Assembly: GCF_000150275.1 (NCBI RefSeq)
Contig: NW_002060956.1
Span: forward strand, 649,379-713,378
Direction of reading: 5' to 3'
Length of the DNA stretch: 64,000 nucleotides
From: Trichoplax adhaerens
Taxonomy: Eukaryota > Animalia > Placozoa
In this document: positions 16,268 to 57,386 of the stretch, in pieces
How the letters are laid out: each line of letters opens with the position of its first letter
Position numbering within the stretch: position 1 is the first letter of the stretch
Notes under the pieces: model-generated
What the model was told of the DNA's origin: nothing
Database searches by the model: none
What the model saw: only the letters and a program-made list of their open reading frames with translations
Position numbers and translations under genes: made by a program

Positions 16268-18310
16268 TCAATTTTTGAGAGAGCGAAAGTAGTCCGGCGC
16301 CATTTCCGATAGCCACTCTGGTTCAATAAGACTTAAATCTCTCATATAACATTTGGTTGTTTGAACTAAATCGGTATATACAACATAGGCCGGCTTAGCG
16401 CCAAATAAGCATGAGGTTGGATGTATAGCTACTGGTAAATGATTAGCAATGGTGAGGTATCCACTGTCCGTTTGCAGTTCAGCTGTATTTAAAAATAATC
16501 CAGCAAGAAGGCACCGTCTTACTAATGAAGTATCGTGATTACAAGATACCAATGGTATCCCAATCGTTTGGCATATCTGGCATAATTGTTGACGAATAGC
16601 TATAGCACTTTTCATGGCGCGAATGTTAATAAAGTTCTGATAGCACCAATCTTTGCTACCTTTCGCCGATTTAAAAGCTTTATATAGATTTAATAAAGTA
16701 ACATGATCCCCTTCAGATGATGTTAATTTTCTTCTTACTTCCAAAGCTTGTTCACGCTTATCATAAGGCGTATACAATATTGAATCTTCAGAAAGTAAGG
16801 CTACAAGTGTAACTATCTCTTCTGTACAGTTGTAATTTTTAGCCGTGAGAAGAATTTTGGAGAATCGTGGTTCAAGCGGAAATCGAGCCATAGTTTTACC
16901 TAATTGAGTCAACTGAATATAGTCCATTTTTTCCACTGCACCTAATTGATAAAGTTGTTCAAGTGCATTGCGTAAATTATTAACTGGTGGCCTATCAATA
17001 AAATCGAAATTGATTACATCCTTGATACCAATGGCTAACATTTGCAAAGCAACACCAGTTAGGTTACATCGTTGTATTTCTGGTCTCGTATGAGACGATA
17101 GCTCGTGATACGAATCTTCAGTGTACAGCCGATAGCACATTCCACTTGATTCTCGACCCGCTCGGCCAGTACGCTGCAGTGCTTGATCTTTGGCAATAGG
17201 TTGGACAGTCAAAACATCAAAACCAGTACGTGAATTATATTGTCGAACTTTGACCATACCGGTGTCAATGACAATTTTAATATCTTTAATTGTAACCGAA
17301 GTCTCGGCAAGATTTGTAGCTAGGACTACCTTGCGACTATTAGACGGAGAAGGCTCGAACACTTTCATTTGCTGACGTGGTGGTAGTCCAGCAAACATTG
17401 GACAGATTAGTATTTCTGCTACATTATTCACTAGATGCTTCAGATGACTTTTAAGCAATCTCTCTAAAGATTCAATCTCTTCTTGACCGGTCAAAAATAC
17501 TACAATTCCCCAATGGGGTGGATGGAGCTTGTGGACTTGAAGGATAGCTACTAGAGCAGAATGGAGATAATCTGGTTGAGGCTGAGAGGTATACATAATT
17601 TGTATTGGAAATTGTCTGCCTTCGATATAAATAACTTTGGCATTATCCAGATAATTGATAAAGTGTTGGGGATCCAATGTTGCAGACATAATCATAATCT
17701 TAAGTGGATTTAATTGCGGATTAGTGGCCCTTAACTGTTGACAATTTTTAATAACACCAAATAAAATATCTGTATGGATGGTACGAACATGAGCTTCATC
17801 TAATATTATGATATTGTAGCGGCGTAATAACTGATCATTCATAGCTTCGCGTAGTAACATGCCATCAGTCATATATTTAATTTTGGTAGCAGGTGAACTA
17901 GTATCATCGAATCGCACAGTATAGCCAACTTTAGAACCTAAGCGAGTACCCATCTCTGATGCTACCCGTTCTGCAATAGTGACCGCAGCAACACGTCGAG
18001 GTTGTGTACAAGCAATAATGCCATTACCGCCTAAACCGCTATGATACAGAAATTGAGGTATTTGTGTTGTTTTACCACTACCAGTTTCACCAATGACAAT
18101 TAAGGATGCATTATTTTTAACCTGCAAGCAAATTTCTTTTCTCACTGGGTAAATAGGTAAACGTTTCCTTTCATTAGCAAGATTGGCTGTAATCTTTTGC
18201 ATGTCCTTAGTACGAAATTTTTCGGTTGTGTTACTATTCCATTTTTGTTTGTTGTCAAGTAGTCCAGTGTGCAAATTACCTTGCTTCATATCATCATTAT
18301 TAGTAGCCAT
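16268..18310 (-). CDS. DHX33: DEAH-box RNA helicase DHX33-like, intronless, 680 aa
   Basis: Motifs GETGSGKTTQIPQ, TQPRRVAA, DEAH, SAT, ATNLAETSVT and QRTGRAGR, followed by HA2 and OB-fold regions. A short N-terminus and TKCYMRDL...EWL.E.APDYF fit DHX33. Confidence 0.88.
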   Translation of the reverse strand: MATNNDDMKQGNLHTGLLDNKQKWNSNTTEKFRTKDMQKITANLANERKRLPIYPVRKEICLQVKNNASLIVIGETGSGKTTQIPQFLYHSGLGGNGIIACTQPRRVAAVTIAERVASEMGTRLGSKVGYTVRFDDTSSPATKIKYMTDGMLLREAMNDQLLRRYNIIILDEAHVRTIHTDILFGVIKNCQQLRATNPQLNPLKIMIMSATLDPQHFINYLDNAKVIYIEGRQFPIQIMYTSQPQPDYLHSALVAILQVHKLHPPHWGIVVFLTGQEEIESLERLLKSHLKHLVNNVAEILICPMFAGLPPRQQMKVFEPSPSNSRKVVLATNLAETSVTIKDIKIVIDTGMVKVRQYNSRTGFDVLTVQPIAKDQALQRTGRAGRESSGMCYRLYTEDSYHELSSHTRPEIQRCNLTGVALQMLAIGIKDVINFDFIDRPPVNNLRNALEQLYQLGAVEKMDYIQLTQLGKTMARFPLEPRFSKILLTAKNYNCTEEIVTLVALLSEDSILYTPYDKREQALEVRRKLTSSEGDHVTLLNLYKAFKSAKGSKDWCYQNFINIRAMKSAIAIRQQLCQICQTIGIPLVSCNHDTSLVRRCLLAGLFLNTAELQTDSGYLTIANHLPVAIHPTSCLFGAKPAYVVYTDLVQTTKCYMRDLSLIEPEWLSEMAPDYFRSLKN

Positions 18311-32926: not shown

Positions 32927-33844
32927 ATGGTAAAATTACTGATTCTTGTTGCTTTGGTAGCTATTCTTGCTACGACTATTGAAGGTAAAGTAAAATAAGG
33001 ATTACCTGGACTGATATACTGACCTCAATATAACAGTTTTAATTTAGGAATTCAGAACATTATTCTCATATAAAATTTTTTTATCAACTACATAGTCTCT
33101 ACTTTCTTCTTATATACAATTACCCTTTAATAAATCACTATTTTGGTGTCGACTTTTTAAGTTTACTCATTTAATCAGACACAGGATACTGTACTGTCGA
33201 ATCTAATAATGATTATTACCATCATCGGAAAGCTATTACTAGATTAATTTTTTGTCCATACCTTAATATTACCAGTGTGCTCAGCTTTTACCCACTAGTA
33301 ATAGCATATACGTAGCGTCTAAGAAAACGAAGAAAGCGAAATATATCTCATTTTTTTGTGACATTAAAATGTATCCAAACTATCTCTCATAATAAACAAA
33401 ATTGATAGATTGAGTTCAATCATTTTCTACAATGATAACAGGTAAAGCTATTAAACAATCTCAGCCTATGGATTTGGGTCTTATCTACTCTGGTTTTCAA
33501 GGACCTCCAGGCAAACGCCAAATGGATTGGAATTATTTCAAAAGAAGTCCATTACGCTATTTCAGAAGATTGGATGGTGACTACATATTGGTAAGGCAAG
33601 ACGATCTTTTGGATAGCTATTTCAAGAAATCAGCTGATAGGACACAGCCGGCACTCGATGAAACTTTCTCACCATAAATGGTTAGTATACTACTACAGCG
33701 TGATACCTTTAAAATGCAAGTTGTTATTTATCCGAGATATTATTCACTATCGATGCTAACTGAATCATTTTTTTATCTATTTCAATGGGTTATTAGCCTT
33801 ACGATGACGAGGAAGAAAAGAAGGGATATTATAATACACATTGA
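32927..33844 (+). CDS. Secreted neuropeptide-like precursor (GPPamide and YF peptides)
   Basis: Signal exon 32927-32984 (MVKLLILVALVAILATTIEG) is followed by a phase-1 intron. The exon from 33442 reads KAIKQSQPMDLGLIYSGFQGPP-GKR-QMDWNYF-KR-SPLRYF-RR-LDGDYIL... It ends either at TAA 33677 or via terminal exon 33797-33844 (PYDDEEEKKGYYNTH*). Confidence 0.85.
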
Positions 33845-46683: not shown

Positions 46684-48928
46684 ATGAAGCAAATTGCCCT
46701 CATTTTTTTCTTGACAGCAGCTATCGTATTTGCTACGGTTAATGCAGAAGGTGAGAATGTGTTTAGAATCCATTCGCTATATATTTTAGCAAATTATTTC
46801 CTTTAAATTCTAATCTGTTGGGATCTATGGCGAAAAATTGACTTTTTGATTTTTTGCCGTAAAAATTTTCTTAGCCACAAATATGATGAATAATACGACT
46901 TGTGTTCTTAACTACTTTATCTTTATGAAGTTAAAATAGAAATCCCAATTTATATTACGGATTCGAAACAAAAATAACTCCATCAATGTGTTATTGTTTA
47001 ATTTTGCACAATCCCCATTATCGATCTAATCGTTATATAATGCTTTAGGAAATTTGGAAAGTATATTCAATGCCAAGCGCGAAGATCAGGCCAATTTAAA
47101 AAGTATATTCGGCGGTAAGCGTGAAGATCAAGCTAATTTGAAAAGTATATTTGGTGGTAAGCGTGAAGATCAAGCTAATTTGAAGAGCATATTCGGTGGT
47201 AAACGTGAAGATCAAGCTAATTTGAAGAGCATATTCGGTGGTAAACGCGAAGATCAAGCTAATTTGAAAAGTATATTCGGTGGTAAACGCGAAGATCAAG
47301 CTAATTTGAAAAGTATATTCGGTGGTAAACGCGAAGATCAAGCTAATTTGAAGAGTATATTCGGTGGTAAACGCGAAGATCAAGCTAATTTGAAGAGTAT
47401 ATTCGGTGGTAAACGCGAAGATCAAGCTAATTTGAAAAGTATATTCGGTGGTAAACGCGAAGATCAAGCTAATTTGAAAAGTATATTCGGCGGTAAACGC
47501 GAAGATCAAGCTAATTTGAAGAGTATTTTCGGCGGTAAACGTGAAGATCAAGCTAATTTGAAGAGTATCTTCGGTGGTAAACGCGAAGATCAAGCTAATT
47601 TGAAGAGTATATTCGGTGGTAAACGCGACGATCAAGCTAATTTGAAGAGTATTTTCGGCGGTAAACGCGACGATCAAGCTAATTTGAAAAGTATTTTCGG
47701 CGGTAAACGCGAAGATCAAGCTAATTTGAAGAGTATCTTCGGTGGTAAACGCGACGATCAAGCTAATTTAAAAAGTATATTTGGCGGTAAACGCGAAGAT
47801 CAAGCTAATTTAAAAAGTATTTTCGGCGGTAAACGTGAAGATCAAGCTAACTTAAAGAGTATTTTCGGCGGTAAACGTGAAGATCAAGCTAATTTGAAAA
47901 GTATTTTCGGTGGCAGACGTGAAGATCAAGCAAACTTAAAGAGTATTTTCGGTGGTAAACGCGAAGATCAGGCTAATTTGAAGAGCATATTCGGCGGCAA
48001 GCGTGAAGATCAAGCTAACTTGAAGAGTATTTTCGGCGGTAAACGCGAAGATCAAGCTAATTTGAAGAGTATCTTCGGTGGTAAACGCGAAGATCAAGCT
48101 AATTTAAAAAGTATATTTGGCGGTAAACGCGAAGATCAAGCTAATTTGAAGAGTATTTTCGGTGGTAAACGTGAAGATCAAGCTAATTTAAAAAGTATTT
48201 TCGGTGGCAGACGTGAAGATCAAGCAAACTTAAAGAGTATTTTCGGTGGTAAACGCGAAGATCAGGCTAATTTGAAGAGCATCTTCGGCGGCAAGCGTGA
48301 AGATCAAGCTAACTTGAAGAGTATTTTCGGTGGTAAACGCGAAGATCAAGCTAATTTGAAGAGTATCTTCGGCGGTAAGCGTGAAGATCAAGCTAACTTG
48401 AAGAGTATTTTCGGTGGTAAACGCGAAGATCAAGCTAATTTGAAGAGTATCTTCGGCGGTAAGCGTGAAGATCAAGCTAATTTGAAAAGCATTTTCGGTG
48501 GTAAACGTGAAGATCAAGCTAATTTGAAAAGTATTTTTGGTGGTAAACGCGAAGATCAAGCAAACTTGAAAAGTATATTCGGCGGCAAGCGTAAAGATCG
48601 AGCCAATTCGAAGAAAAAATTTGGCTGTAAATGCAAAGGTCGAGGTAATATGAAGAGCATGCTCGGTGGTAAACGTGAAGATCAAGCAAACTTGAAAAGT
48701 ATTTTTGATGGAAAGCGTGAAGATCAAGCTAATTTGAAAAGTATTTTCGGTGGTAAACGCGAAGATCAAGCTAATTTAAAGAGTATTTTCGGTGGTAAAC
48801 GTGGAGATCAAGCTAATTTGAAGAGTATTTACGGTGGTAAACGCGAAGATCAAGCTAATTTGAAGAGTATTTACGGTGGTAAACGCGAAGATCAAGCTAA
48901 TTTGAAGAGTATTTTCGGTGGCAAATAG
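46684..48928 (+). CDS. Placozoan SIFGamide neuropeptide precursor
   Basis: Signal exon 46684-46750 (MKQIALIFFLTAAIVFATVNAEG) and a phase-1 intron to 47049, then NLESIFNAKR and 44 units of 14 codons (the last is 13), mostly EDQANLKSIFG-G-KR with amidation and dibasic cleavage sites. Confidence 0.97.
47081..48925 (+). repeat. Coding tandem array of 44 x 42-bp units
   Basis: GAAGATCAAGCTAATTTGAAGAGTATTTTCGGTGGTAAACGC repeated, with mostly synonymous variation. Confidence 0.97.
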
Positions 48929-56564: not shown

Positions 56565-57386
56565 TTACTTCTTAACTGTAACGCTAACGCAAACATTATC
56601 TTTGATGTAAAATCTTAATGGTTGTGATGCCCAATAATTACCAGCATATTCAACACCGATTCTTTTGGCACTGACCAATTCTAGCTGCTTATCCTGTGGT
56701 TTAGGCTGAATCCATATCTCGTTACTTTGACATAAGTCAAGACAATTTATGGTTTTATCTATAGCCAAAGCTTGGCATAACTTGGCTGGTCCGTTACATA
56801 ATTTCTCGACGGCTGTATTTCTTTTATTCTTCTGCTTACCGTTTAATCTCAATTTAGTCATGTGGTCGATTCCATAAGTAGGTTGAAGAGCTCTAACCAA
56901 AACAGCAGCACCATCTCCTCGACTAGAAATATTAAAGCAAAAGTGTATACCGTATATTTGATAAACATAGGCGGTACCTGGTGCCATGAACATTGCTCGA
57001 TTACGTTCAGTTGCTTTGTTACCGCAGGAATGGGATGCTTTGTCATCACCGCCTAAGTAGGCTTCAGTCTCGACAATTCTTCCTGCTACCAGGCTATCAT
57101 CTTTTAATTTACGAACTAACTCGCACCCAAGTAATTTTTGACTTAAAGTACTACAGTCTTCATCAAAGAATGAATGATCTAATTTTGTTTGGCTAGATAG
57201 ATTGAACATGGCAGACTGCTCTTCATCACTGCTTACAGCTTCGGTCTTTCGCAATTTCTTCGATGTTGTAGCTTTCCTACTTTCGATCAAATCAAGTTGA
57301 TTGCCAGAGCTGCAATCTAATTGTCTTTTATAACTTGCAATTCGTTGCTTAAATTGGCGCAGATTGGAAGTATCACCATCGTCCAT
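56565..57386 (-). CDS. MPG: DNA-3-methyladenine glycosylase, intronless
   Basis: Motifs GRIVETEAYLG, MFMAPGTAYVYQIYG, GAAVLVRALQP, LCNGPAKLCQAL, RIGV and PLRFY. Confidence 0.95.
   Translation of the reverse strand: MDDGDTSNLRQFKQRIASYKRQLDCSSGNQLDLIESRKATTSKKLRKTEAVSSDEEQSAMFNLSSQTKLDHSFFDEDCSTLSQKLLGCELVRKLKDDSLVAGRIVETEAYLGGDDKASHSCGNKATERNRAMFMAPGTAYVYQIYGIHFCFNISSRGDGAAVLVRALQPTYGIDHMTKLRLNGKQKNKRNTAVEKLCNGPAKLCQALAIDKTINCLDLCQSNEIWIQPKPQDKQLELVSAKRIGVEYAGNYWASQPLRFYIKDNVCVSVTVKK

Follow-up and report, generated by a model that had tools for sequence, protein, structure and literature searches.

Does a short open frame in AT-rich DNA of the Trichoplax adhaerens H1 genome encode a genuine precursor of secreted peptides and, if so, is that precursor a new one? 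The earlier note on this locus, made from the raw sequence, had read it as a peptidergic precursor with a signal peptide, an amidation site (GKR) after ...SGFQGPP and three peptides ending in YF, each placed before a dibasic site. Having analysed the whole surrounding stretch of DNA (64 kb, hereafter the window), we find that the gene is real, ordinary in kind, already known and poorly characterised. We consider it highly probable that it is the H1 copy of a placozoan-specific neuropeptide-like prepropeptide gene, the peptides of which are stored in eta cells and act as paracrine signals.

The gene consists of two exons and its product is a secreted precursor of 97 residues, the parts of which are listed in Table 1. 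The ATG at 32927 starts MVKLLILVALVAILATTIEG, and its frame meets the GTAAAG donor at 32985; exon 1 translates as MVKLLILVALVAILATTIE, followed by the first base of the Gly20 codon. When the two exons were joined by a script run on the window sequence, the CDS of 294 nt was open across 97 codons, and the splice sites of this two-exon model fit the consensus. Exon 2 reads, in order, G KAIKQSQPMDLGLIYSGFQGPP-GKR-QMDWNYF-KR-SPLRYF-RR-LDGDYILV-R-QDDLLDSYF-KK-SADRTQPALDETFSP-stop, with dibasic sites at residues 44, 53, 61 and 81, so the amidation site and all three YF peptides with their dibasic sites are present in one reading frame, as had been claimed. The N-terminus has the features of a signal peptide as read from the sequence, with Lys3 in the n-region, then a hydrophobic core of 12 residues and a Gly at −1. 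In addition, the N-termini found by mass spectrometry in the orthologues are [G].KAVKQ.. in Hoilungia hongkongensis H13 and [K].AIKQ.. in Trichoplax sp. H2, and the orthologue is flagged ‘wSP_nTM’ (signal peptide present, no transmembrane segment) in the same source (Table S5 of Najle et al. 2023, Cell 186:4676; PMC10580291). As these N-termini lie at K21 or A22, signal cleavage is placed after Gly20, and both the hydrophobic core of exon 1 and the orthologue N-termini bear out the signal peptide of the earlier reading.

Table 1. Features of the precursor gene and of its neighbours in the window
Feature	Position	Strand	Description
Exon 1	32927..32984	+	Start codon, signal peptide M1-E19, first base of Gly20 codon; 58 nt identical in H2
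Intron	32985..33441	+	457 nt, phase 1, GTAAAG...AG; acceptor AG 33440-33441; splits Gly20 codon
Exon 2	33442..33677	+	Remainder of Gly20, entire propeptide K21-P97, stop TAA 33675-33677
N-terminal propeptide fragment AIKQSQPMDL (A22-L31)	33447..33476	+	Mass spectrometry in H2
GLIYSGFQGPP (G32-P42), then Gly43-Lys44-Arg45 amidation/cleavage signal	33477..33518	+	Amidated form in H2
QMDWNYF (Q46-F52) + Lys53-Arg54	33519..33545	+	Predicted pyroGlu heptapeptide from sequence; QIDWNYF in H2
SPLRYF (S55-F60) + Arg61-Arg62	33546..33569	+	Mass spectrometry in H2
LDGDYILV (L63-V70) + monobasic Arg71	33570..33596	+	H13 counterparts by mass spectrometry
QDDLLDSYF (Q72-F80) + Lys81-Lys82	33597..33629	+	Predicted pyroGlu peptide from sequence
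C-terminal peptide SADRTQPALDETFSP (S83-P97)	33630..33674	+	Mass spectrometry in H2 and H13 orthologues
Unsupported ‘third exon’, PYDDEEEKKGYYNTH and stop	33797..33844	+	Probably 3′ UTR or flank; reachable from 33591 donor only
SIFGamide precursor	46684-48928	+	Signal-peptide-like exon from 46684 (MKQIALIFFLTAAIVFATVNAEG...), then repeat open frame
DEAH-box helicase exon	16268-18310	-	DEAD, Helicase_C, HA2, OB_NTP_bind domains
Methylpurine-DNA glycosylase	56565-57386	-	Pur_DNA_glyco, E 7e-63

That the frame is no more than a chance product of AT-rich intergenic sequence would suit the gene-poor surroundings (~28 kb at 26–30% GC) and the apparent lack of a public protein model: at 90% identity the H2 protein clusters with no other entry, from which we infer that an H1 protein model is absent from the public protein collection, and the gene seems to be missing from the public H1 protein set. 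The motif statistics, however, rule chance out. The 77-residue mature part holds three YF[KR][KR] motifs, which is well beyond chance expectation: at least three were found in none of 1000000 composition-preserving shuffles, and two in 21 of them. In a six-frame translation of the 64-kb window, the precursor frame was the only open frame with at least two YF-dibasic motifs. A six-frame search of the organism's own genome assembly (105.6 Mb in 1414 contigs) returned no paralogue, and the gene is single-copy.

Protein searches were run with exon 2 and with the H2 database protein (P0001), which stood in for the joined H1 protein. In a word-indexed protein search, exon 2 retrieved two proteins, TrispH2_000750 and an 82-residue fragment from ENA with 55% identity. 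TrispH2_000750, from Trichoplax sp. H2, has 97 residues and is 99% identical with the H1 product, the sole difference being QIDWNYF in place of H1 QMDWNYF, and the H2 locus (L001) has 99% DNA identity with the window over exons, intron and flanks. As the two are 99% identical throughout this region, the H1/H2 comparison is powerless for testing constraint. Judged by identity, gene structure and synteny, the H1-type gene is the orthologue of TrispH2_000750 and a member of orthogroup OG_1414.

A more distant comparison was provided by a complete orthologue (L002) in a metagenome assembly (ENA ERZ27263980, contig k141_1102019; 1150 bp). A prokaryote-style gene caller had cut this gene to an 82-residue ORF, starting at a TTG within exon 2. 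Its exon 1 is MAKLLIVLALVAIIAVTIE plus G, followed by a GTATGG donor, and its acceptor AG is followed by GT AAA GCT; the intron, of 420 nt, has the same position and phase as that of the window gene. The peptides known from H13 recur in its product, with TPVRYF standing in for SPVRYF, and on account of these shared peptides we assign L002 to a Hoilungia-like lineage. Nucleotide identity between the two genes is 84% in exon 1 and 61% in exon 2, whereas the intron and 5′ flank, at 37–42% in a forced global alignment (37% for the intron), are essentially unalignable AT-rich DNA. Over 95 aligned codons, the Nei–Gojobori method gave a pN of 0.19 and a pS of 0.52, i.e. a dN/dS of ~0.25 at a dS of ~0.9. 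These orthologues with their conserved intron and dN/dS of 0.25, together with the motif statistics and the detection by mass spectrometry of peptides from two orthologues, refute the chance reading, to which we attach a negligible probability.

The pattern of conservation within the precursor is informative. Invariant or conservatively kept between the H1 and Hoilungia-like sequences are GPP-GKR, W-x-YF-KR and P-x-RYF-[RK]R, and also LD...IL-x-R-Q, DD-x-LD-x-YF-KK and SAD...QP-x-LDETF-x-P. Residue by residue, W49, Y51, F52, K53 and R54 are invariant in the QMDWNYF region, where the Hoilungia-like peptide is N-terminally longer; P56, R58, Y59 and F60 in the SPLRYF region, where R61 is replaced by K and the site is still basic; L63, D64, I68, L69, R71 and Q72 in the LDGDYILV region; and Q72, D73, D74, L76, D77, Y79, F80, K81 and K82 in the QDDLLDSYF region. 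The three YF ends, the Gly used for amidation and the C-terminal half of each peptide are thus invariant between the lineages and all cleavage sites are kept basic, whereas the N-terminal halves of the peptides differ, with the Hoilungia-like sequence adding a 12-residue acidic insertion ahead of ...GWEYF. Constant C-termini and processing sites with variable N-termini are typical of the precursors of bioactive peptides.

The earlier note had extended the gene to 33844, which is too far, and this raises the question of its 3′ end. A form with three exons, either as the sole transcript or as an additional one, would join the GTAAGG donor at 33591 to a third exon that runs from 33797 to the TGA at 33844, with PYDDEEEKKGYYNTH in place of QDDLLDSYF and of the C-terminal peptide. 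Both splice sites of this form (donor 33591, acceptor 33795-33796) look sound, and the reading frame is kept across the junction. However, the H2 gene model stops at the equivalent of 33677, peptides coded past the putative donor have been detected in H2, including the true C-terminus RTQPALDETFSP.[-], and the Hoilungia-like orthologue, with TTA ATA AGG at this point, lacks the donor GT. On these three grounds we place the end of the CDS at 33677 and reject the three-exon model to 33844 as the main form; we regard a three-exon form in any role as very unlikely, and the same holds for its survival as a minor isoform. The fragments of the C-terminal peptide reported by mass spectrometry, SADRTQPALD(E), RTQPALDETFSP.[-] and ETFSP in H2 and KQPSLDETFAP and ADKQPSLD in H13 (PMC10580291), likewise show that translation continues to the stop at 33675.

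The question of novelty was settled by the published record. The earlier note had suggested a comparison with published placozoan peptide sets, and a match was found: Table S5 of Najle et al. includes TrH2_TrispH2_000750 under the label ‘hypothetical_zebrafish-like’, within an orthogroup, OG_1414, that is represented in all four placozoans (Tadh, TrH2, Hhon and HoiH23), and this gene is called ‘hypothetical’ there, with no named known precursor (PMC10580291). As the precursor was thereby catalogued in 2023 with mass-spectrometry evidence, its novelty is removed, and of the earlier suggestion that it might be ‘undescribed or poorly characterised’ only the second half holds: the precursor is known only through a supplementary table and has had no functional characterisation. 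In the full-text literature, no paper carries these peptide strings or the gene identifier in its main text.

All of the evidence on expression and on peptides was obtained from the orthologues in H2 and H13 rather than from the H1 genome studied here. Single-cell expression, which the earlier note had named as a further check, places the orthologues firmly among the peptidergic cells, with an enrichment of ~520–590-fold in eta cells: the top cell type of TrispH2_000750 is peptidergic_eta, with a fold change of 589.9, and Hoilungia H13 Hhon_g04984.t1 is found in eta cells with a fold change of 523.7 (Table S5, PMC10580291). According to the main text of the same study, peptidergic cells co-express prohormone convertase, two carboxypeptidases, PAM and glutaminyl cyclase (PMC10580291). 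By extension from these orthologue data, the H1 precursor would be expressed in secretory cells that bear the processing enzymes. The reading of the locus as a peptidergic precursor is thus supported by published peptidomic and single-cell data on its H2 and H13 orthologues.

The peptides detected in Hhon_g04984.t1 match the layout of the H1 precursor. From the N-terminal part of the propeptide, AIKQSQPMDL and the extended forms ..DLG and ..DLGL were found in H2 by mass spectrometry, with (K)AVKQGPLDL(G)(Y) as the H13 counterpart (PMC10580291). The amidated GPP peptide predicted from the GKR site was detected in both species, as GLIYSGFQGPP with a C-terminal amide in H2 and as (G)YVLSGVYGPP-amide, plus shorter amidated forms, in H13 (PMC10580291), and the Gly that donates the amide (GPP-G-KR) is invariant against the Hoilungia-like orthologue. 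The amidation of the proposed GPPamide therefore stands, although the actual form is the N-terminally trimmed (G)LIYSGFQGPP-amide, which results from a non-basic cut after Asp-Leu. SPLRYF in H2 and SPVRYF in H13 were found exactly as predicted and rank at abundance percentiles of 0.977 and 0.976 respectively (PMC10580291). The region between the second and third YF peptides is represented in H13 by LDKNTILI, LDKNTIL and DKNTILI (PMC10580291), and the detection of LDKNTILI proves cleavage at the equivalent of the single Arg71. Potential cleavage sites are present at KR45, KR54, RR62, R71 and KK82, and the boundaries of the detected SPLRYF and LDKNTILI match them. In contrast, pQMDWNYF, for which the earlier note had also proposed a peptidomic search, was not among the peptides detected: neither Q(I/M)DWNYF nor QDDLLDSYF is listed for the H2 or the H13 gene in Table S5 (PMC10580291), and the strings DWNYF, WEYF and DSYF gave no match in the part of that table available to us. 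With a blocked N-terminus and no basic residue, pQ(M/I)DWNYF and QDDLLDSYF would ionise poorly in positive mode, which may explain their missing signal.

Could these species be by-products of a protein with another role? The precursor might be a small secreted cargo protein of granules or mucus (antimicrobial, digestive-adjunct or sorting) that does not signal, the detected species being by-products or fragments of it. Many of the detected peptide species do carry ragged, non-basic ends, which degradation could produce, and no receptor or activity is established for any peptide of this precursor. Najle et al. identified 60 peptides from 53 precursors and docked the 60 peptides in silico, including GLIYSGFQGPP (H2NP006) and AIKQSQPMDL (H2NP007) (PMC10580291); neither of these two is in the 30 positive receptor pairs of that docking, a result that also suits a cargo protein, and SPLRYF was not found by name in the portion of the docking sheets that we could consult (PMC10580291). 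Against this, the ends of SP(L/V)RYF coincide exactly with dibasic sites and the peptide lies near the top of the abundance range in two species, C-terminal amidation is found in both of them, conservation of the peptide C-termini over the Trichoplax–Hoilungia split is strict, at a dN/dS of 0.25, and expression is limited to one peptidergic cell type, not to gland or lipophil cells. We therefore regard a non-signalling cargo role as improbable and retain the precursor of secreted peptide signals as our reading.

Outside the placozoans no relatives came to light. When 1.84 billion cluster representatives were searched exhaustively with a HMMER profile, nothing beyond the H2 protein and the ENA fragment was returned. 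No cnidarian, bilaterian or other relative is therefore detectable, the ‘zebrafish-like’ label is unsupported as a statement of homology and, within the reach of sequence methods, the family is restricted to placozoans. Pfam gave nothing meaningful for exon 2, the H2 protein or the ENA fragment; a lone match to KaiA, at an E-value of 0.11, fell short of the cut-off. The ESM Atlas model is disordered, with a pLDDT of 0.35 at which structural neighbours are meaningless, and its nearest neighbours by language model are a mixture of unrelated neuropeptide precursors (PDH, galanin, NPY, tachykinin and others); this likeness would fit a prohormone without a fold, and it concerns the class of protein and is no sign of homology. 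With the multi-peptide prohormones of bilaterians the precursor shares its general build, in which the signal peptide is followed by a short, disordered propeptide with dibasic sites and a Gly that donates the amide, whereas sequence homology to PDH, galanin, NPY or tachykinin precursors is absent from the Pfam and profile searches. Despite its RYF terminus, SPLRYF stands directly before RR without a Gly and was detected unmodified, and it is accordingly not of the RYamide/RFamide type; the amidation motif of RYamide/RFamide/NPY-type peptides is missing here, and Pfam and profile searches gave no match to them.

The closest comparison is with the classical placozoan precursors (SIFGamide, FFNPamide, PRWamide, WPPF, LF, PWN and others; Nikitin 2015; Varoqueaux 2018), among which the earlier note had been unable to place this sequence. 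These also have a signal peptide, and they have in common processing by convertase and carboxypeptidase, amidation, pyroGlu chemistry and an unorthodox N-terminal cut beside an acidic residue; several of them, such as the WPPF and LF precursors, likewise release non-amidated peptides with aromatic C-termini. However, the classical precursors carry many tandem copies of one peptide (Table S5 gives 42 SIFGamide matches in H1 and 37 in H2; PMC10580291), whereas the precursor studied here has 97 residues with single copies of five to six peptides and lacks such tandem repetition, only the YF terminus recurring, and sequence similarity between the two is undetectable. The gene is indeed not one of the named repetitive precursors, a placement with which its single-copy peptides and its lack of any main-text mention agree.

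The gene lies alone in an AT-rich, ORF-poor stretch from ~18.5 to 46.7 kb of the window (~28 kb, 26–30% GC). From ~18500 to 46700, the 97-residue precursor gene is the only recognisable coding feature, and long open frames are almost absent. The next gene downstream, on the same strand and ~13 kb away, is the SIFGamide precursor, the repeat frame of which (47054-48928) has 624 codons and repeats the unit (E/D)DQANLKSIFG-GKR in tandem, a few of the copies toward the 3′ end being degenerate. Farther away are two housekeeping neighbours on the minus strand, the large DEAH-box helicase exon and the methylpurine-DNA glycosylase of Table 1. This gene corresponds to TrispH2_000751, numbered directly after TrispH2_000750 in H2, and is expressed in omicron and not in eta cells (Table S5, PMC10580291); two peptide precursor genes of different cell types (eta and omicron) thus adjoin on one strand. 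A Pfam search of 47054-48925 on this strand gave matches to Nucleoporin_FG (E 1e-67) and MC1, which we rejected as low-complexity artefacts of the repeated ...SIFGGKR... unit and from which automatic annotation could misname the SIFGamide gene. Outside the window, consecutive H2 gene numbers are also found for TrispH2_000335 (pQLSVSKMPF, eta), 000336 (delta) and 000337 (PWN precursor, delta) (PMC10580291), and the runs 000335-000337 and 000750-000751 hint that placozoan peptide precursor genes tend toward small neighbourhoods.

These observations can be combined into a course of processing, which the H1 sequence or the published peptidomics of the orthologues demonstrate, and a proposed course of signalling. 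The 20-residue signal peptide, largely encoded by exon 1, routes the 97-residue product to the secretory pathway and is removed after Gly20, and the propeptide is then cut at the four dibasic sites and at the single R71, the basic residues being trimmed thereafter. Gly43 is converted into the C-terminal amide of ...GPP-NH2, and an additional non-basic cut after Asp30-Leu31 yields (G)LIYSGFQGPP-NH2; such ‘unorthodox’ N-terminal processing has been reported for Cnidaria and Placozoa (PMC9545775). SPLRYF is freed as an abundant free-acid hexapeptide, and Q(M)DWNYF and QDDLLDSYF would presumably be freed too, their N-terminal Gln being cyclised by glutaminyl cyclase. The peptides would probably be stored in granules of the ‘eta’ peptidergic cells, and they may act on other cells in a paracrine manner, through GPCRs or DEG/ENaC-type channels. 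A further suggestion, which we put forward tentatively and regard as rather doubtful, is that the three conserved YF peptides (x-W-x-YF, x-P-x-RYF and L-D-x-YF) form a placozoan-specific ligand family, set apart from the co-released GPPamide, with one dedicated orphan receptor group, and that the adjacency to SIFGamide marks an old neuropeptide neighbourhood with cell-type-specific regulation (eta versus omicron).

The analysis adds no new entity, the precursor having been catalogued before with peptidomic and single-cell support; it adds the conservation of intron position and phase, the invariance of the processing sites, the lack of non-placozoan relatives, the single copy and the adjacency to SIFGamide, and an annotation update could supply the missing H1 gene model. 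A reading of raw DNA made without tools had recovered a real precursor, and its predictions of SPLRYF and of the GPPamide were confirmed by mass spectrometry. Placozoans coordinate their behaviour without neurons, through secreted peptides, and each validated precursor is therefore a piece of the pre-neuronal signalling repertoire.
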